Positions 16,540-28,716 of a stretch of DNA of 64,000 nucleotides are shown in pieces. Position numbers and translations under genes: made by a program. The stretch comes from Mantamonas sphyraenae STR306 (Eukaryota; Protista; CRuMs). The notes under the pieces were generated by a model that saw nothing but the letters and a program-made list of their open reading frames with translations, ran no database searches and was not told the DNA's origin. The DNA lies in assembly GCA_026936335.1 (NCBI GenBank), contig JAPMXV010000033.1, positions 62,001-126,000 of the forward strand, given 5' to 3'. Each line of letters opens with the position of its first letter. Position 1 is the first letter of the stretch.

Positions 16540-19500
16540 TCATTGAGCGTGTTCGTCCACTGGGTGACCTCCAAACGACGACGAATCACTCGTCGATTTG
16601 CGCGGCGCCTTGTACGGTGAATCACTCTGCGTGCCCGTGCCCGTGCTCGTCTGCGTGTGTGTCCTGGACCCATCTCCACCTTGCTTGGCTGCCCAGTCCA
16701 CCGTCACGTGACGCATGTCCTCCTTGTCCGGCAGACGCTTGACACGAGCGTGTGATCTACGCTTGATGCGCAGGCGGAACACCTCATCGTACAGCGCCAC
16801 CACGAGGGGCACAAACACATAGGCAACCCACAGGGCCCATAGAGGCGCAGGAACATTGCCCAGGGTGTCCATTCCCACGCCAATGTTGCTCAGGCCTGCG
16901 ATGGCCGTGAACCAGCCGTTGATCACATGGACACGGTCCCGATCGACCACGGGTGCGTTGTGTTGCATCGGACCAGCACGAGAAGGCTGGGTCGCACGCA
17001 TGGGTTGCGCCAGACACAGCACCAAGATCACCACACCTGCAACCGAATGCACCCTGCTCAGGTGCACTCGCAGCGTCAATGCAATCACCACAATGCCTGC
17101 TACCACAAAGGCAAATCCCACCGCGTGCATGCGCATGTGCCACTTCACCGCACGTGGCGTGCTGCGCTTTCGCCGCGTAGCCACCTTTTTGTCTTTCAGA
17201 AACATGGCGTGGTAGCGCACCAGAAACGCAGACGGGAACACAAACAGACACCATCCAATGGCCATTAGGATGCCGTGGATCACGCGTCCGTCCACAGAGT
17301 CAAGTACGTCCCCTGTTTTCAGGTCGATCCTGACAAACTCCCTGTCCGTAGCCATGTGCTGCACAAAGTCGTCGGTTATGCCAAACGCCACAATGATCCC
17401 ATTGACGCCATTCTCTACGCTCTGATCCGTCGTCTCGTTTGCCTTGAGCGGGCGCCGGAAGCGGATCGACGTCGACGTGGCGGTCTGCGTCGCCGCTGTT
17501 TCCAGCAGCGAGAACCGTCCACCGGCCACTTCGTCCTTTGGAGGGCGTCAAGTAGCCCTTGCCCACATGGTCTTCCACGATGGCAGTGGCGGTGGTGTCG
17601 TCTACCCAGCCCACCACAATGTCTGCCTGCTGCATGCCATCGTCTGTCGGGTTGAATCCGATGCCAACCCATCCTTTGGTTGGACACGTCACAGACATGT
17701 CCAACACCGAGGTGTCGATGGCCCAGCGCAACGTGCAGCGTCCTTGCAGCACGCTTGCAGTCAACCGCAAGTCGGCGCCCGCGGCATCCAGACCCTTTGC
17801 ATTTGCACTCTCGGGCGTCAATGACGAATGATACAGGAAAGCATTGCGAGGCAGATTCCTAAGACCGGTGTTGCGTTGAATCACGGCGCTGAGGGTGCTG
17901 CTCTCGATAAACTCGCGTTCCGTGGCAGTGTACGTGTCCCCTTCGTACCAGAAGCGGTCTCCGTCACGCAGCACGGTGTACATGTGCTTGGTGGCCACGT
18001 GGAACAGTGAACCCAGCGAGCTTTCCTTTGTATAGTGTTTCTCTGCCAGTCCACCTGCATATGCATCGATGTCGGCGACGGATGTGTACAGGTTTTGCAG
18101 CGCCGAGATCATTGCCGGATCGTCTGTGATTTGATCCACTGTGCTCACAGGCGTCAACCCGTACGCCTGACGAAGCACGTTGTACGCAGGGATGCCGTGT
18201 TCGCGGCCCCTGTTTATGTTGAGCGCGGCAAGGTCGTGCCCGCCACCAAACCCCGGACGCCCAAACAGAAAGTTGCGCATGTCATCGATGAGAAAGGTGT
18301 CGACTTGGCCTTGCCTGTCCAGCATTGGTCCCAGCAGCAGGTCGTCGATGCCCCTGGACACTGCGTCTGGGTTGTAAAAGACATCGCGCAGCAGGTAGCC
18401 CGAATGAGTGGCAATCGTTCCCTCCTGGTTGAGTCTGGCCAGCCACGAGTTGATCTGCAGAAAGGTGAGTGTGAGTTTGAGTGTGAGTGTGAGAATGGGG
18501 CGGTACTATCCGCCGCGGGATCGTTTCAATCGACGACCGGCTACGCACCTCGCTGTGGCCGTAGCGGAACACGCTGGCACCCATGGCGTTTTCCATTCCA
18601 GCGTTCACGTTTGCCTTGTAGCCTGTGTAAGCAGGCAGGCGTTCGCCCAGAAGCACCGGAACGTATTCGTTGACGGTGATGGATTGCATGATGCCGATCA
18701 CGAGACGCCGTGCTTCCTGGTACAGTTGTTCGTCTCCCCAGGTGGGGTTTGCAGCAGCCAACACGTCACACAGACGGTTGTGCTCGCGCAGAAAGATCAC
18801 GTGCAGCGCTGTCAGCAGCGGATTCTCGTTTGCTCGGACGTCTCCAGCCACAAACACTGTGGGTATCACATGTGCCATGCGCCACGCGCCGGAGTGTCAG
18901 CCTCTATAGTGCAATTTTAATCCAACCATTACGGTCTGCACCGGAAACTTACGTTCTGTGTCTGGTTTGCGGCCTGGATTGTCGTTCGGCAGGCCAAAGG
19001 TGTTTCGAGGCAGCAGTTCACCAGCCACGGCATTTGTGGTGGACCGCAACTTGCCTCCTTGCAACGACCGCAAGGTGGCAGCTCTCGATTGCGTGTGGCC
19101 GTAGATGTGAGACGCGTCAATGTACGACGAAGCCTGGTTGAGTTGTTGCCGCGGCGAGCTCCCAGCCGCATACATGGTGCGGATCTGCGAGATTACGGAT
19201 GTGTTGGAACACAGAGGATCAAAGTACTGTGGGATTTGGGCGACCATTGCGTGCGTGTGGGGTCGTGTGTGAGCTGTTGGCGAAGCTGTTGAAGGACTCA
19301 GGCGCAAGCCTTCTTTTCCTTCTTCCCGACGTTTTCTCACCACTCCGGCGATCTATGGGCTGGCTTCTGTCATTGCATACCTCGTCACACACGGGAACGG
19401 GGATGTCACAACGCTCTGAAGAATTCATCGAAGCCAGAGTGATGTCGTGTGCCAAGAACTGGCCAAAAAAGGCGATCATTCTGTGTTGCGCGTCAGCTCT

Positions 19501-19845
19501 CCGGAGACAAATGGGTAGCCGTTTTTCCAGCCGCTCTCCCTGGTGCACTTACGTGGACTTGTCTGTGGCTGTGACGTATGAGTCTGTGGTGCCGCGGAGG
19601 ACAAAGAGCTCATTGCTTATGGTGCGTGGGTTGGGCAGGTTCTTTGTGGCGTTCCCTCGCGGTTCTGAGATTCCGTCGTCGTAAGCGACCTGCGGAACCT
19701 TGATGCGCACAAAGGGCGTGCCAGCCTGGCCCCAATCCGGGTTGGCTTGGTTGTTGCCGCTTCCGTCGATCGATCGGTACTCGGCATGGGCGAAGAGGGC
19801 GCACAGGAGCAGCACGACGACCAAAGGTCGACACTCGCTGATCAT
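16540..19845 (-). CDS. Heme peroxidase (peroxidase-cyclooxygenase family)-DOMON-cytochrome b561 fusion, paralog A; introns 19552-19481, 19380-19227, 18952-18857, 18548-18455; apparent extra base at ~17537-17539
   Basis: Signal peptide, [45 protein letters not shown] and [31 protein letters not shown] with a downstream His. Four b561 His (VIHG, KWHM, RVHS, RVHV). Confidence 0.88.
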
Positions 19846-19975
19846 GACACACGTGCAAGGAATGAATTGCGATAGGACTGTACAGGCGTGTGTGCAATGG
19901 CCGATGGCGTGTGTGTGTTTTGAGCGTTTGCTTGTCGTGCGTTTTGGCTGCGAGTGCGCGAGTGCGACCACAGCC

Positions 19976-22900
19976 ATGGCCAAGCGCAAGCGGGACGAAG
20001 CATTGGAAGACGATGCCTCGTCGCAAGCGGCGTCGACGGACAGCGCAGCACCCGAACGCAAACGTGCTGTGCCGTCGTCGCCTAAGAAGCAGCGCAAAAA
20101 GGCCGGTGCGGGGACGTCGGCAAACGGCGTGTCATCGGCTGGATCACCCAAAAAGCGACCGCCGAGCAGCGCCAGCAAACGAAGCAAGAGCAGCAGCAAG
20201 AGCAGCAGCAAGAGCAGCAGCAAGAACAGCAGCAAGGACAGCAAGAGCAGTAGCAAGAGTAGTACTCCTAAACGCAAGGGAAGCACCAGCAGCGGCGGGA
20301 GCACGAGCAAAGATGGCCAGAGCAAGCGCAAGGCGAGCGGGGGTAGCAGCAAGAACAAAAGCGCGCGAAACATCAAGTCGGGAAAAAGCGCGCCAAAGGT
20401 CGGGACGCCTAGTACACCGAAAGGCAAGGACGGCACGGAGAACAAGAGCAGCAACAAGAATGGAAGCAGCAAGAGTAAGTCCAAACCAAAGCCGAAGAGC
20501 AGCAAGAGCAGCAGCAAGAGCGGTAGCAAGGCCCGGAGCAGCGAGAGCAAGAACCGAAAGCGCAAGAAGCGCGACCGCAGCCGCGACCGCAAGAAGAAGA
20601 GCAGCAGCAGTGGCGACAATGACAACAACGGCCACGGGGGTGGCACTGGTGGACAGCAGGAGACCATTGTACACAGTGACGCCGGGCAACTGCTCGCCAA
20701 AACACTCCAGGAGCTGCGCAAGACACACGCGGCATCCAAGAGCTCCGGCATCCCTGCGTTTATCTCACCTGCACCAGCACAGCTGCGTCGCATGACGTCG
20801 TACTCGCAGCTGTCTTCGCAGGACAGCGTGGGTAGCGACTCGCCGCTGGCTCGAATCACACAGGGCAGCAACCTGTACGGAAGGAAACGGCGGCGCGGGC
20901 GTAGGGTGCGTCCCGTGGTGGAGGAACCTATGGTTGTGGCAGACACGTCTGTGCAGCTGCCCGACGACAATTCGGTGGCCGAGAGTGAGGCCGACGGCGC
21001 GGAAGCACACACGTCAGACGACGCCGACGGCCTGTCCGGACTCGGCCTGTACACAGGAGGTGACCACGCGCACAATCGACTCAAGGTGCGTGCCAAACCA
21101 CTGGACATTGAGCGTGCGCTGCCCATTGTCTTTACGGAGGAGCGGGAAGGAGAGTCACCGAGGCCTGTGCAAGCGTTTGGCTCGTTTGACGAGGCGACGG
21201 GCAACGTGCTGCCCGAACTCATGGACGGCACGCTTCAAAGTGTGGATTTGGAGGGCGAGTTGCAGTTTGTGAGCAGCGACATGCGCTTCCACCCACAGAT
21301 GCAAAAGACGGTCACGTCCAAGGTCAACCGTCAGACGATTCCCATTCCCAACGTGCACGTGAACAGCGAGTACGTGGCTCGTGGTGGCTTCCGCATGCCC
21401 AAACGGGGCTACATCAAAGACACCTTTGCGTACTCGGAGCGGGATATTGCTGAGAATGCGTACGATCTGGACAGCGACGACGAAGAATGGCGCAGCATGC
21501 ATACCTTTCCCGCCCAGGCGCTCGGCGACCATTGCGACACACACACGGAAATGCGCACACGCAGCGCCAAGATGAGTGCGGGTCAGAGTGGCCAAGGAGG
21601 ACGCGGCAAGCAGAAGGCGACCCCGGCACCCCTGTTTCCCATGAGTGCCAATGTGTTTGAACGCATAGTCTCGTTGCTGGAGAAACAAAACTACCAGCAA
21701 GCACTCAAGTTCAAGTGGCAGCGCTACGAAATGCTTGAGCTGATGCGTGTGGAAGCGGACAAGGCAAGGCTGCTGGCGGATACGGTGCGGCAGCGGGAAA
21801 AGAACAAGCGACGGGAGCTGGAAGTGCGTCGAGAGCTGTTTCTGCGTCAAGCGGTGGATATGGGTCTGGTGTCTGCGCGCGAGGAGCTGAAACGCATCGT
21901 GCGCAAGCGTGAGGAGATGCGCGTGCAACAGAGCAACTGGTCGCGCAAGCACAAGCGCTACATGGATCAGCACACAAAGGGCGCGCCTGAAGAGGTCTAC
22001 TTTCTTCCGCCCGAGAGTCTGATGATGATTGAAGCCACACCCGAGGCGACAGCAGACGGGAGCGGCCAGAAACGGGCCGAGGGTGGCGACGCTGGAGGCA
22101 GCGGCACAGCGGTGGCACAGACAAGGAGAGTGGCCACGGGGCGACACAGAGCAAGGTCGTGGTCAGCAGCAAGGGCAAGTCGATCCTGTCGCACGACGAA
22201 CACGGACGACCTGTAAAGGCATACCCGGACGATGCTTGCTGCATCTGCTACGGCACAGACACGCAGGTGAACGACAGGCTGGTGTACTGCAGCGAATGTG
22301 ACATTTGCGTGCACGAAACTTGCTACGGGGTGTCTCGGGAGGGGGATAGTGAGGCCGACTTTGTCTGCCAACGATGCGCCCAGGCGGGCAAAGACGCACA
22401 GGTGCAATGTGCGCTGTGTCCGGTGCCCTCGGGGGCGTTTAAACGTCTGGGGAAGGACAAGTGGGTGCACGTGGTGTGTGTGCTCTGGACACAGGGGATG
22501 AAGTTTGGCCGGCCAAGCAAGCTGGACCAGATCGGAGGCCTGCCTGGGGTAAGCAAGCGGGTGCTGAATAAGATGTGCTATCTGTGCGGACAGCAAACGG
22601 GTGCATGTCTGCGCTGTCAACGCTCTTCATGCAAGCGCATGTATCACGTGACGTGTGCGCTGCTCAACAAGTTTCATCTGAATCTGCCTCCGAAAAGCGG
22701 CAAGGTGTTCTTCAGTGAGGCGGACATGCGCAGCGGGGCGGTGCCGTGCCACTCGTTCTGCCACGAGCACGCCGTCAACTACACGGGCGACGTGTACACG
22801 GACGAACACAACGAGGTGGCTCTGTTTGTGGACACGCTGGACATGAGCAGCGGCGAGAACTGGAGGCGACGTCAGCGGCGTGTGCGCGACGCCCAACAGC

Positions 22901-24860
22901 AAAGTGAAATCGAGCAGCTCACCGCCCAAAGCGCAACAAACTCGGAGCTGCAATGGATGGGACTTGTGGGCACAGCCGCCATCGCTGCCGATGAACTGAC
23001 GCCCGTGGATTTCGTCGCCGAACAGCGCGCCTGGGAGGAAGAGCACACTGCAAAGCCGCATGGTGTGTACACACGGCGAGCTGTGGTCGAGGTGGACAGC
23101 ATGCAGGAAGGCGGTGGGCGACGTGGTGGTCCGCGACGCCGTGCGTGGGAGGCGACGACGACGACGACGACGTCGTCGTCGACCTCATCTTCGTCTTCAT
23201 CCATGACGAAACGTGAGCCTGAATCGGATCTGGAGGCGATGGATGCCATGGACGTGGAAGAGGTGGCCAATGCGCGGGGGGAGGCCAACGCAGATACAAC
23301 CGTTGGCGGGATGAAGGAGTGGCACTGGGTCAACGACGATGGAGAGGATCTGGTGTGCACTGCGTGCAGGCGTGCCCGTTGTCACGAGGTGGAGGACGAC
23401 ATGTTGCTGTGTCGAGGGGAATGTGGACGTAGTTTCCACCGTCGCTGCTGGCATTTAAATTATAGCCAAATGCCAGAGGCGCGATGGACGTGACACAGGA
23501 GTGGAAATGCTTGGATTGCGAACCGGAGCAGAGTCTGCTGAGCACCGATGGCCGCGTGGCAAAGAAACAGGAGCATGCTCGTGCACAGGCTGCACATGCA
23601 CATGCAGCCATGCAACGGGCCAGGGGACAACATGTGGGTCACAGTGATGTGGATGAAAGCCGTATGGAGGAGGATGAAGAGACGGGAAGCAAACGAGAAG
23701 AGGAAGCGTACGACGGCTACGACTTTGGGATTCAAGCTTTCATGGGGTCGCAGGCATGCGACGTGTGCGGAGACGCAGCACAAGACGAGGTGGACAAGCA
23801 TGTAGTGTGTGGGATGTGCGGCGTGTGTGTGCACCAGACATGCTACGGTGTCAAGCGCATCCCTCCGCGCGGTTGGTTTTGCGCCCGATGCAGCAGCAGC
23901 GATATGGCTAGCGCCAGCTGCTACCTGTGCCAACAGAGTGGAGGGGCTCTGAAGCAGACTGTGGACGGCAAGTGGGTGCATATGGTGTGTGTGCTGTGGA
24001 TCCCGGGGCCCAAGATTGTTGATGTGGAGAGCATGGGCACGATCAAAGACTTGGAGGCGGTTGACGAGGCACACTACGATCACACGTGCGAAATGTGCGG
24101 GGGAGACATGGGCGCCATGCTGGGCTGTTCACAAAGGAGGTGCAACCATTGGATGCATGCGTGGTGCGCGCGAAACGAGGCCAACGTGATGATGTATTGC
24201 GTGGAAGACTCGGAGCAGCAGCCGCGGTACCTGTTCTACTGCCCTACACACGTGCACACGGGGGTGCAGCTGGGCAAAGAGATCAACCAGGCCCTGCAGG
24301 GCGCCAGCGAACCTCCCATGCATGGCTACGGCATGCGCAGGCACATGGACAACGAGGAACTGGATGCTTTTGACCAAGAGGTGGCTGAGGTGCGTGCTCG
24401 CCAGCGCGCTGAAAAGAAGAAGAGCAAGGCGAGGCGCAGGAAGGAGGAGGAGGCGGCCGCTGCCGCTGCTGTTGTTGCGCAAGCCGAGGCAGAAGCAACT
24501 CAGGCTGCGATTGACTTGTCTGAGCGCGCGCGACCCCGCCAAGCAAACACCAGCAGCAGTTCGTCATCGTTTGGTCACACTGACGGTGGCCATGTTGACA
24601 ATGATCAAGAGGAAGAAGGATCGACATGGGCGGCGACAAAGAGCAAGTCTGCGTTTATCCCGGAGAACCAACTGTACGATCTTGACTTGCAGGCGGTGGC
24701 CACAAAACTCAAGGTGGATGTGAGCGTTGTCGAAGCCGTGTATCATTGGTGGGAGCGGCGACGCTCGCAGTCGGGCAGACCTCTGCTGCGTCAAGCTCAG
24801 GTGGGCATCTTTGACGGGATCTTTCAGAGCTTGGACGATGACGACGAGTGGTATGTGTGA
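19976..24860 (+). CDS. BRPF/JADE/Nto1-like MYST-HAT scaffold: EPC-N region, PZP, PHD, PZP; two apparent missing bases (~22105 and ~23478)
   Basis: LDIERALPIV, IPIP and YDLDSDDEEW (EPL1/EPC-N). Two PHD-Zn knuckle-PHD modules (CCIC..CSEC..VHETCYG..CALC..GAFK..WVHVVC; CDVC..VHQTCYG..GALKQT..WVHMVC) with a single PHD between them. S/K-rich N-terminus. Confidence 0.82.
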
Positions 24861-25045
24861 AAAAGGTGAAGGGGGGGGGAGGGAGACAGAGAGGCAGGAA
24901 TGCAGCTCAACGTGTCGCGTACGACTCTGCCGACGCTGAATGACTGGGAAGCGTGTTTCCACGCTCGTCCATGACGACCACTTCTGGCGAGGCATTGACC
25001 TGGCCCGGCAGTTCCACGGTTGGATGGCCAGTGCTGTCCTCATCG

Positions 25046-28000
25046 TCATCGTTGGACACGCCGCCTTCCGAACGCATAGGCTTGAGCAATTCGGCGCCAG
25101 GCAGCCGTGCTGACTTGATGACACCCGCAGAGCGATTGGCACGCAAGCTGGATGTGCCTGCGGAGCGTTCTGAACGTGGGATGCCGCTGTGCGACGTGGT
25201 TTTCGTCATGGCCCGTGGTGGTGGAGTTGTCGTCGAGGGAGAACACACTGGTGCGTGGGCTGGAACCAAAGGAGGGTTCTTGACCCAAAAGACGCCGGGA
25301 ATTGCTCAAGCTTACACCCGTGTGCGGGGTGGAGAACCCCGAGCCGTCTTCCTTGACAAAACCTCCGGATGTGCCTTCCGTGGGCGTGGCTGATGCCAGC
25401 GCACGTGCGGCCTTGTCCAACTCGTTTGTCGAGCGTGGTTGCAGGTACTTGCGACGGCGGCCCCACAGATCGTACCGCTTGATCTCGTTCCATGCCAGGA
25501 TGCCAAAGAACGTTGCCACCCAGACGCCAAAGACCACGTACACGGCAATGTGCACCGTCATGAGAACCATCCCCAACGCCATGCAGGTGATACCCAGCAG
25601 GATGACGTAATGGCCGTTGATACGATGTAGGCGGTCGCGTCCAAGACGAGGCTTTTTCTGTCCGTTTGAGCCCAGAACAGGGCGGTAAGCACGGAATGGG
25701 CTGCATGAGCAGCAATACAAACACAAGGACGCCCAGATAGGCGTGTGTGCTTGCAAAGTGTTCGCGCACGACGGAAAAGATGATGATCATGCCGGCGGTG
25801 CTCAGGGCAAAGCCCACAGCGACGAGGCGCACGTGCACACGAACGGCGTCGGTAATCTTGAGGCCGTAGTAGCGCAGATAGACGACACTGGGCACAAAGG
25901 CAATGACAAAACCTGCTGCCATGAGGATGGCGTGGATGACACGCAAATCAAAGGTCAGCGCAGAGGTCCCTTGCTGGAAGTTGATGTCGGCGACGCCGCG
26001 TGCGGAGCGAGCGTGTTGCTCCAACACGTCACGATCACCCATGGCAAAGACAACCACCGTGTTTGAGTTGGCCACAATGGGCCTGTCTGTGCTGGAGTTG
26101 ATGGCAAGCGGACGACGGAATTGGATCATGGTGAAGCCGGCCGTTTGCGAGGCGGACCGTGCAATCAGGGAGCTGGATCCCTGCTGCGAGGTGTCTTTCA
26201 CCGGAGGAAGGTAGCCACGGCTGTAATAGTCGTCGACCATGGCTACCTTTGTGGTGTCATCGAACCATCCGATGACCATGTCTGCGCTTGTCATGCCCCT
26301 GTCTGACGGATTGAAGCCCACCCCCACCCATCCTGTGGTCTGTGCACTGACCATCATGTCCAAGTAGGTGTCACTGACTCGCCAATGCAGCGTCATCTTG
26401 CCGTCAAGTACAGACAGCGAGTTTGGCCAGCCTGTGGTCACCACCTGCGTGGAGACGCCATTCGACGTCGTGCCTGCGCCTGCGCCGCCATCCTTTGGAA
26501 GCAGAAATGCATTGGCAGCCATTTCGCTCTCAGAAAGGCCTGTGTTGCGAGCCACCAGCTGACGCAACGTGGTGGCTTGCCACTCGGCAATCTGTGCTCC
26601 TGAATACTCGGCGGTGTTTTCAAACCAGAAGCGATCGCCGTCGCGCAGGCGCTGGTACTGGTCCATCACTACGGCGCGGAAGAGAGCGCCCAGGTTGCTG
26701 TCTCCGGTGGTGTCTTCTGCCAGGCCACCAATGTAGGCGTCCACGAGGGAGACGTCGTTGCGGTACGCCTCCTTCAGGCGATTCTGCACCTCGGTGTCGC
26801 TTGTGATTTGGTCAAAGGTGCTTACTGGCACCAAACCGTACGCTTGGCGCATGGCATTGTAGCTGGGCACGCCGTGTTCGCGCCCACGGTTGATGTTGAG
26901 GGCCACGAGGTCGTGGCCGCCAAAGGCAGGGCGCCCAAAGAGAAAGTTGCGCATGTCAGACACAATCTCCACGTCGACCAGTCCCTGCGGGTCGTTGACG
27001 AGGCCACGCAGGTACGCATCAATGCCCACCTGGGAGACGGAGGCCGGGTTGAAGAACGAATCGCGCATGAGCTGGTCGCGTTCGGGGATGGTGCGTCCTT
27101 GGGCGTCGAGACGACGCAACACCGAGTTGGCTTCGCTGTGACCATAGCGAAAGGCGGCAGAGGCGAATCCGTTGGCCACCGCCGGGTTGACATTTGCCTT
27201 GTAGCCCGCGTAGTCTGGCAGGCGCTGGCCGATGATGGCAGGCAGGTACTCGTTGACAAGGATGCTCTGGAAGACGGCAATCACATGTTGGCGTGCCTGC
27301 TGGTACAGCTGTTCGTCGGACAGGGTTGCATCCTGTGCCACGAGCTGGTCCGCCTTGCGGTTGTGCTCGCGCACGAGGAGGGTAGTCAGCGAGATGAGCA
27401 TGGGATTCTCGTTGCAGCGTATGTCACCACAGGCAAACAGTTTGCTGTCCGCCATATTGAGTGGGTTCTGCATGTTCAGTTGTGTGGCCGAGTTGAACGG
27501 CAGCAGATTGCCTGCGGAGGTCTTGAGCTTGCCTCCTTGCAGTGTTCGTAGCTTGCCTGCGGTCACGCCGTTGGTGCCGTATATGTGTGAGGCATCCACA
27601 AACGACGTTGCTTCGTTGAGCTGTTCGCGGGGATTGGCGGTTGAGGTGCCCGTCCCTGAGTACACCTTGGTGCGTGACTGGCGAATGATGGACCGATTTG
27701 TACACTGGGGGTCGAACCACTGTGGGATGGGATGGGATGTGGGTGGTGTGGTGTGCATGTGCGCGTGTGTGCGTGTGTTTGTGGTGTTCTTCCGCGTGAG
27801 CAAAACCGATCGGCGACTTCTGGACGGCAAGTGAAGCCACGGAGCCACACGAGCCAAAAAACGCCGCGCTCCTTCCACACCACCCACCTCATCACACATG
27901 GGCACGGGGATGTTGATGGGCTCTTTGCCAGAGCTCGGGGGCTCGGTGAGGGTGATGTCATGGGCGAGGAATTGGCCCCAGGCCGTCTGCGAAGTGTGTC

Positions 28001-28650
28001 CAGGGACATTTGTGTGACGGTGAGTTTTCTTTCTTCCTGAATGGAAAGACTGCGCCTGTGCACAAGCCACACGCAACTTACCAGCAATCTGATTTGAAGA
28101 GAGATTGACAATGTGCAGACGGGGCAGCGAGTACACACAGGAAGGCGGCGGAGGAGTGTGTGAGTCGTTGGACGCGGGTTGTGTCGGGACGTGTGAGGAC
28201 AGCGGTGGGAACAGGGACGTACGAGTTGCGCAGTGAAGAGCGCTTTCCTGTGCCGATTGTACGGCACACGATGTTGGAAATATTGCGTGGGTTGGGCAGA
28301 GTGCTGACGTTTCCCTGCATGCCCCGAGGAACCGAGATGCCGTCCTCGTAGGCGGCCGGAGCGATGCGCAGGAGCGGTGAATTGGCCGCGCCTCTATTTA
28401 CACTGTTGAAAACGTTGTTACCTGTTCCATCATACGAACGAAAAGCTGGGATGGGTGCGTGGGGTGGGGTCGGGTGGTGAATGGAAACGGATGAGCAGGT
28501 AGAACGTTGTGAGGGGTGAAAGGTGCACACAGAAACTTGGATTGCAACAGCCAGCAACAGCAGCAACGTACCGGCCTCCACGCATCCCGGTGACAACAGC
28601 AGCAAGAGCAGAAGCAGGAACAGTACACTCTGGCTTCTTGTGCTCGTCAT
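25046..28650 (-). CDS. Heme peroxidase-DOMON-cytochrome b561 fusion, paralog B; introns 28571-28446, 28222-28089, 28081-27987, 27887-27720; apparent extra base at ~25698-25700
   Basis: Leu-rich signal peptide, FRSYDGTGNN, GQFLAHD, GDIRCNEN, FRYGHS and [37 protein letters not shown]. b561 His in VIHA, RVHV, STHA and RLHR. Confidence 0.88.
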
Positions 28651-28716
28651 GGAATTGCAGGGTGTGGGAAGGATTTGCGGGGTGGGTTTCTTTTGTGTCT
28701 GCTGCCGCTCCTCTCC

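Follow-up and report, generated by a model that had tools for sequence, protein, structure and literature searches.

Can a haem peroxidase on the outer side of a membrane be paid in electrons from the cytosol through a chain that belongs to the same polypeptide? This question is raised by two genes, A and B, in a 64,000-nucleotide stretch of the genome of the protist Mantamonas sphyraenae STR306 (GenBank assembly GCA_026936335.1, contig JAPMXV010000033.1, positions 62,001 to 126,000 of the forward strand); this whole stretch is the window, and positions are given within it. Each gene joins a haem peroxidase to a DOMON domain and a cytochrome b561 membrane domain, and the original prediction, made from the sequence of the window, saw in the pair an electron wire feeding a surface peroxidase. 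We propose that the two proteins are outward-facing peroxide reductases run on cytosolic reductant through the b561 and DOMON haems. In our judgement this proposal has about an even chance of being right; its electron-transfer steps, donor, membrane and physiological role are what we infer.

A Pfam scan of the open reading frames (ORFs) of the exons found An_peroxidase, DOMON and Cytochrom_B561 in both A and B. One open frame of gene B (25206-28136, minus strand) scores 407 bits with An_peroxidase (PF03098, profile positions 72-530), 77 bits (76.8) with DOMON and 27.5 bits with Cytochrom_B561, and exon 2 adds 48.5 bits over peroxidase profile positions 1-61. That one frame covers all three domains partly because an intron of 168 nucleotides (nt) is in frame and stop-free. 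The gene A exons score 62.7, 17.5, 60.9, 139.8 and 149.6 bits with An_peroxidase, jointly covering positions 1-530, and the b561 domain of gene A scores 21.7 bits alone and 23.9 bits with its frame neighbours. Database searches and folding used single exons or two homologs, P0036, a complete Trinity transcript of Diphylleia rotans with the whole architecture, and P0037, a 904-residue uninterrupted ORF that lies beside proteasome and RPA3 genes on a eukaryotic metagenome contig; spliced models of A and B entered only the alignment, the coordinates, the local phmmer and hidden Markov model comparison and the tree. The exons of gene A were placed by homology to gene B and P0036/P0037 (tblastn) together with canonical splice sites, which makes this a homology-based model, and gene B was resolved with contigs of three public sequencing runs, X1-X3. 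The resulting models are as follows.

16540-19845, minus strand: gene A, whole coding span, 962 codons plus stop, provided that one base of the C-run at 17543-17545 is skipped
19553-19845, 19381-19480, 18953-19226, 18549-18856 and 16540-18454, minus strand: gene A exons, with introns of 72, 154, 96 and 94 nt, all GT..AG
24907-28650, minus strand: gene B, whole coding span, 1072 codons plus stop once two reference insertions are removed
28572-28650, 28223-28445, 28082-28088, 27888-27986 and 24907-27719, minus strand: gene B exons, with introns of 126, 134, 95 and 168 nt, all GT..AG

Overall identity between the corrected proteins is 43% (52% in the peroxidase, 46% in DOMON and 35% in b561). As predicted of these paralogs, the genes have two intron positions and phases in common, the first in phase 2, six codons ahead of the Gly of GQFLAHD, and the second in phase 0, directly after CDE; the gene B versions of both are confirmed by an RNA contig described below. 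The span first assigned to gene A, 16540-19845, holds, whereas the end assigned to gene B, 25046, does not, the reads of X1-X3 placing the real stop at 24907-24909. Reading through the 168-nt intron of gene B (27720-27887), which is a multiple of three, a plain ORF listing adds 56 false residues to the peroxidase domain. Domains and motifs map to the models at these positions.

19783-19845, minus strand: gene A signal peptide
17801-19782, minus strand: gene A peroxidase domain, residues 22-543
19444-19464, 18819-18845 and 18549-18569, minus strand: gene A peroxidase motifs GQFLAHD, R-x-N-E and FRYGHSE, respectively
17308-17776, minus strand: gene A DOMON, residues 552-707, ligand Met within 17621-17638 and ligand His within 17353-17367
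16774-17289, minus strand: gene A b561 core of five helices, its four His within 17266-17286, 17128-17148, 17035-17058 and 16915-16938
16543-16773, minus strand: gene A cytosolic tail (predicted)
28573-28650, minus strand: gene B signal peptide
26460-28572, minus strand: gene B peroxidase domain, residues 27-556, introns included in the span
27957-27977, 27576-27608, 27402-27428 and 27132-27152, minus strand: gene B peroxidase motifs GQFLAHD, calcium site, R-x-N-E and FRYGHSE, respectively
25965-26438, minus strand: gene B DOMON, residues 564-721, ligand Met within 26280-26297 and ligand His within 26010-26024
25478-25946, minus strand: gene B b561 core of five helices, its four His within 25923-25943, 25824-25844, 25731-25754 and 25613-25636
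24910-25477, minus strand: gene B cytosolic tail (predicted)

With residue roles mapped to DdPoxA and LPO (PMC5787809), the distal Gln-His, the catalytic Arg, the calcium-site motif, the ester Glu and a proximal His partnered by Asn are all present in the two peroxidase domains, and both genes carry GQFLAHD, a GD(V/I)R(A/C) motif and a T/S-S-F/Y-(V/I)-D-A-S motif. At the position of the ester Asp, A and B have Ala, and so does the genome's third animal-type peroxidase, an unfused one encoded at the C-terminal end of a roughly 1020-residue open frame (contig C29, C29:227189-228721). A and B therefore show not the two-ester-bond pattern (Asp and Glu) of family 1/2 enzymes but the one-ester pattern of DdPoxA. 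Because P0036 and P0037 keep the Asp, the one-ester state is a trait of this genome or lineage and not of the fusion. A, B, P0036 and P0037 all have the six haem ligands, Met and His in the DOMON and four His in b561, and across 50 sequences resembling CYBDOMs (DOMON-b561 proteins) these ligands are at least 90% conserved. The b561 His lie by turns at the outer and the inner ends of the helices, the arrangement expected of a two-haem core, and basic residues flank both of those on the cytosolic side. Hydropathy gives each protein a signal peptide and five hydrophobic helices, so that the N-terminus is predicted outside and the C-terminus inside, with the peroxidase and DOMON predicted to face outward and the tail to be cytosolic. 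From sequence, then, each gene would encode a type-I-like membrane protein with the features of the peroxidase superfamily, the second ester bond excepted, and those of a CYBDOM. Every motif that the original prediction named, from signal peptide and peroxidase motifs through the DOMON Met/His to the four-His b561, is present in both.

Are these architectures intact genes? The reference carries frameshifts, one in gene A and two in gene B, which would be expected if the fusions were gene-model or assembly artefacts or pseudogene copies, an explanation that we regard as very improbable for the pair and that is refuted for gene B. A 3118-nt contig of run X3 lies on 25058-28679 and ends at 28679 in sequencing adapter. 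Missing from it are 28446-28571, 28089-28222, 27987-28081 and 27720-27887, each of them a GT..AG intron. X3 behaves as an RNA library; X1 and X2 gave unspliced contigs of the gene B locus. The spliced contig spans the gene B start codon, peroxidase, DOMON and b561, which bears out for this gene the expectation of a single transcript covering all domains and is also compatible with extra, shorter isoforms. In addition, contigs of all three runs lack both extra bases of the gene B reference. The features concerned are listed here, together with the frame change in gene A.

28082-28088, minus strand: 7-nt micro-exon of gene B, ATTGCTG, from the RNA contig, with the splice-site letters CAG before it and GTAAGT after it
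25693-25695, minus strand: one extra reference base in the gene B b561 domain, between helices 3 and 4, absent in the X1, X2 and X3 contigs
25198-25200, minus strand: one extra reference base in the gene B cytosolic tail, absent in the X1, X2 and X3 contigs
17543-17545, minus strand: C-run with a one-base frame shift in the reference, gene A DOMON, putative assembly insertion

The micro-exon, which gives two Leu codons immediately before TAWGQFLAHD, is seen in the RNA contig as a jump from 27987 to 28223 that carries AGCAAT (plus strand) between its sides, the seventh letter being common with the flank. Dropping the extra base at 25693-25695 puts b561 helix 3 in frame with helices 4 and 5, and dropping that at 25198-25200 shifts the stop to 24907-24909, giving a protein of 1072 residues. 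As X1-X3 differ from one another at scattered single letters, the reference is the outlier at both insertions. A 35-nt intron was rejected as the cause of the gene B frame change, since it would delete residues that align between the paralogs and the reads show a one-base difference. Both insertions sit in short homopolymer runs, and this one gene has two of them in about 3.8 kb; other apparent frameshifts in the genome may likewise stem from the assembly, which matters for every other gene call. At 24973-25087, each of X1-X3 has two alternative 115-nt contigs with about five differing positions, and these pairs look like two alleles at the gene B 3' end, where it converges on a plus-strand gene ending at 24860.

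For gene A, skipping one C at 17543-17545 yields a stretch as long as its counterpart in gene B and similar to it in residues. Past the shift, 334 codons stay open (chance about 1.4e-5) and all haem ligands are kept, which argues, together with homologs that are uninterrupted ORFs, against artefact or decay in this gene too. Because gene B has two such errors in 3.8 kb, we read the shift as a probable assembly insertion, which would be the third such error at this locus. A 34-nt intron was considered as the cause and rejected, as it would delete residues that align between the paralogs.

Is the fusion peculiar to Mantamonas? Word-indexed protein searches with the DOMON-b561 region returned almost no fused relatives. 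In an exhaustive profile search the best 150 of 10,804 matches were inspected, and the census of fused relatives drawn from it is a lower bound. Besides P0036 and P0037, it includes P0151, a 1445-residue uninterrupted ORF with four DOMONs on a eukaryotic metagenome contig (neighbours MIF4G, MAP65 and RCC1), P0182, a fused metagenome protein from ENA with two DOMONs, and two proteins of Cymbomonas tetramitiformis, P0172 (KAK3239360.1) and P0257 (KAK3282883.1), that combine a peroxidase, two DOMONs, a five-helix four-His core, a cytochrome b5 and an FAD/NAD(P)H reductase. In P0172, the four-His helices are followed by cytochrome b5, FAD_binding_6 and NAD_binding_1 domains on the predicted cytosolic side; if their gene models are right, P0172 and P0257 would each amount to a complete NAD(P)H-to-peroxidase chain. 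All complete DOMON repeats in P0151, P0172, P0182 and P0257 (two to four per protein) keep Met and His. Clusters in the ESM Atlas add 179 members with An_peroxidase, Cyt-b5 and DOMON, and 75 members, mostly from Mucoromycota, with An_peroxidase and DOMON and apparently without a recorded b561. The architecture recurs in Diphylleia, in metagenome ORFs and in Cymbomonas proteins; it is not unique to this genome and sits, uncharacterised, among the hypothetical proteins of public databases. The cytochrome b5/flavin reductase of the Cymbomonas-type relatives and the extra haem DOMONs that relatives have between membrane and peroxidase both suggest an outward flow of electrons to the peroxidase.

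A quick maximum-likelihood tree built from 50 peroxidase domains has a branch that separates the nine fused rows from the others with a Shimodaira-Hasegawa-like approximate likelihood ratio (SH-aLRT) support of 95, and A and B are sisters (support 99). The unfused sample of this tree consists of the best matches of gene B, with no outgroup and no reference members of the seven named families, and a single origin of the fusion is compatible with it but not proven. A Glu two residues after the proximal His (FRYGHSE) is found in seven fused rows, all of those shown whose proximal motif is intact, and in 0 of 40 unfused rows; P0182, the eighth fused row shown, has a divergent proximal motif.

18549-18551 (gene A) and 27132-27134 (gene B), minus strand: marker Glu of FRYGHSE

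This residue marks the fused clade, and a role for it in docking or electron transfer is speculation. The same comparisons speak to the possibility that the two halves work independently, the DOMON-b561 part being an ordinary CYBDOM ferric/cupric reductase or an anchor and the peroxidase using diffusible substrates, with no exchange of electrons. We consider this unlikely, because the pairing is old and conserved and the fused peroxidases group together and share a marker residue, because in relatives the chain is made longer by additional haem-type DOMONs that separate b561 from the peroxidase, because the fungal cluster appears to pair peroxidase and DOMON without a recorded b561, and because the six haem ligands conserved in both paralogs at 43% identity would be needless in a mere anchor.

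The b561 and DOMON fold tests were made on the homolog P0036, not on proteins A and B themselves. Its DOMON-b561 part (548-896; predicted local distance difference test, pLDDT, 92; predicted template modelling score, pTM, 0.79) matches cytochrome b561 (4o6y, Z 16.4), Dcytb (5zlg, Z 16.3), the DOMON of DBH (4zel, Z 16.6) and the cellobiose dehydrogenase cytochrome domain, which binds haem (1d7c, Z 13.9). A phmmer search of the gene B DOMON-b561 region against PDB sequences gave nothing significant, and the relationship was found by fold comparison only. The closest solved peroxidases are the cyanobacterial 8s6c (E 4e-96, Z 46.4) and DdPoxA (E 6.5e-82, Z 42.2), and the peroxidase-homology domain of DUOX1 compares with the P0036 model at Z 39.9. 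Shared two-domain geometry with mouse DUOX1 was rejected, the superposition having a root-mean-square deviation of about 16.7 Å. A complex prediction for the P0036 peroxidase (25-545) and DOMON (560-705) with two haems scored 0.00, which speaks neither for nor against docking. Two independent activities are favoured to the extent that neither this prediction nor the full-length P0036 model lent support to docking, that DOMON and b561 matches also occur at a locus on contig C62 of the same genome, and that characterised CYBDOMs reduce free ferric and cupric chelates (PMC10784544).

How might the proposed peroxide reductase work? In the first step, a cytosolic one-electron donor, here most likely ascorbate, would reduce the inner b561 haem; in Cymbomonas-type relatives the donor would be the fused NAD(P)H-FAD-cytochrome b5 unit. 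The outer b561 haem would then take the electrons and pass them to the DOMON haem, and in the third step the peroxidase haem, oxidised by H2O2 to Compound I or II, would receive them. The net result would be peroxide reduced outside the membrane and paid for by cytosolic reductant, the opposite of the way in which DUOX runs. As a by-product, the chain may rescue Compound II, keeping any oxidation cycle of iodide or thiocyanate turning; such rescue would use the same electron path as peroxide reduction and is compatible with it. In support of the membrane steps, the electron currents that HYP1 carries across the plasma membrane depend on ascorbate and pass through two His pairs and the Met/His haem of a DOMON (PMC10784544). 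Ascorbate or an analogue is plausibly made, since two aldonolactone-oxidase loci are present in the genome.

In which direction would the chain act on the peroxidase? Compounds I and II have potentials of about +1 V, and the potentials of a chain that takes its electrons from ascorbate or cytochrome b5 are positive. The Fe(III)/Fe(II) couple of DdPoxA, which has one ester bond, has an E'0 of -0.276 V (PMC5787809). Given this value, and by analogy with DdPoxA, an ascorbate-reduced chain could reduce Compounds I and II, whereas the resting ferric haem would be beyond its reach, and the analogy favours peroxide reduction or Compound II rescue over DUOX-like production of oxidant. Comparative evidence supports the predicted anatomy and the idea of a wire that feeds a surface peroxidase, and of the outputs that had been considered for it, peroxide reduction fits, whereas a DUOX-like oxidant output is disfavoured by the potentials. 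That alternative, an oxidant-producing surface peroxidase acting on iodide, thiocyanate, matrix or prey substrates, with the chain making H2O2 or superoxide from O2 or averting dead-end Compound II, seems to us improbable. It would suit the habits of Diphylleia and Cymbomonas, carriers of the fusion that are phagotrophs. It would also suit the distal Gln-His-Arg triad, calcium site and ester Glu, all intact as in DdPoxA, an enzyme that oxidises iodide and thiocyanate at >1e8 M-1 s-1 and restricts bacteria (PMC5787809). Yet six-coordinate b haems reduced by ascorbate or cytochrome b5 lie far above both the O2/superoxide couple and the -0.28 V expected of a peroxidase haem with one ester bond, which makes O2 reduction uphill, and the genome has at least six separate NOX/FRE-type NAD_binding_6 loci as sources of oxidant.

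Several points weigh against a peroxide reductase supplied through the membrane. The b561 and DOMON potentials are general literature values, and that of DdPoxA is transferred by analogy. The full-length AlphaFold2 model of P0036 (pLDDT 83, pTM 0.67) has a low-confidence linker and gives no firm picture of how the domains dock. The Cymbomonas proteins are genome annotations and possibly merged models, although two paralogs and the 179-member cluster agree. The Mucoromycota cluster seems to imply that a membrane wire is not obligatory for pairing a peroxidase with a DOMON. Gene A is a putatively intact gene, argued for by homology and an open frame.

How does the proposed peroxide reductase compare with known systems? 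Like the CYBDOMs Arabidopsis HYP1 and CRR and animal FRRS1/SDR2, A and B have a signal peptide, an extracellular DOMON with a Met/His haem b and a b561 with two His pairs; known CYBDOMs, however, carry nothing beyond the DOMON, and what they reduce are free ferric or cupric chelates, whereas here a complete N-terminal haem peroxidase is the likely built-in acceptor. DUOX1/2 likewise have an N-terminal extracellular peroxidase domain of the same family joined to an electron-conducting haem membrane domain, but theirs is a NOX-type six-helix domain with EF-hands and an FAD/NADPH dehydrogenase, and it makes H2O2. The membrane domain here is b561; Ferric_reduct, FAD_binding_8, NAD_binding_6, EF-hand and dockerin gave no match in A or B in the Pfam scan of exon ORFs. 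By that scan A and B do not belong to the DUOX/NOX group, and NOX-type loci lie elsewhere in the genome; the view of them as DUOX-analogous but different fits the shared peroxidase family and the absence of NOX domains. Moreover, the DUOX peroxidase domain lacks the proximal His and activity (PMC4420034), whereas the catalytic residues of A and B are all kept and the expected direction is peroxide consumption. DdPoxA and 8s6c, 'family 6' short peroxidases, are the closest solved structures, and the one-ester pattern of DdPoxA is shared, but they are soluble, secreted, single-domain enzymes with diffusible donors. The cytochrome domain of cellobiose dehydrogenase is also a DOMON-like Met/His haem b on a flexible linker that shuttles single electrons to an extracellular redox enzyme; there the source is an extracellular flavin dehydrogenase and the acceptor a separate copper enzyme (LPMO), whereas A and B would draw on a source on the far side of the membrane and pass electrons to an acceptor within the same chain. 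A conceptual analogue is cytochrome c peroxidase, a haem peroxidase in which not a small molecule but another haem protein reduces Compound I/II, although it has an unrelated fold, is a soluble two-protein system and involves no transmembrane step.

To our knowledge, the haem peroxidases of this superfamily take their electrons from donors that diffuse freely, and for CYBDOMs, although widespread, we know of no acceptors other than metal chelates. Full-text searches of the open literature and a term search of a 2015 superfamily review brought up no peroxidase-DOMON-b561 protein, subscription papers lying outside this scope, which agrees with the expectation that no protein of this architecture has been characterised. 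We tentatively suggest, judging the idea somewhat more apt to fail than to hold, that A and B are the first members of an enzyme class that has so far gone undescribed and is conserved across eukaryotic supergroups. Its members would be self-contained transmembrane peroxide reductases of four haems run on ascorbate or NAD(P)H, with relatives of five to seven haems, some with FAD, and the functional inverse of DUOX. If true, cells could use cytosolic reducing power against peroxide beyond the membrane or within a food vacuole, and the fusions would provide a new branch of the peroxidase-cyclooxygenase superfamily, a physiological partner for DOMON-b561 and the first natural protein acceptor for a CYBDOM.

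The DNA of the window is eukaryotic, with about 59% G+C, in an assembly of 25.06 Mb in 78 contigs; A and B are both on the minus strand, with two plus-strand PHD-finger-type genes in between. Further DOMON and b561 genes of this genome lie at C62:246382-247254 and C70:74187-75247. Elsewhere, a Cavostelium transcript (P0204) combines Temptin_C, fn3, DOMON and b561. Perhaps DOMON-b561 serves more generally as an add-on that supplies extracellular domains with electrons. An ESM Atlas cluster of 54 members, mostly from ciliates, has Cyt-b5, DOMON and FAD_binding_6 with no peroxidase, and looks like a free-standing NAD(P)H-driven module for outward electron transfer.

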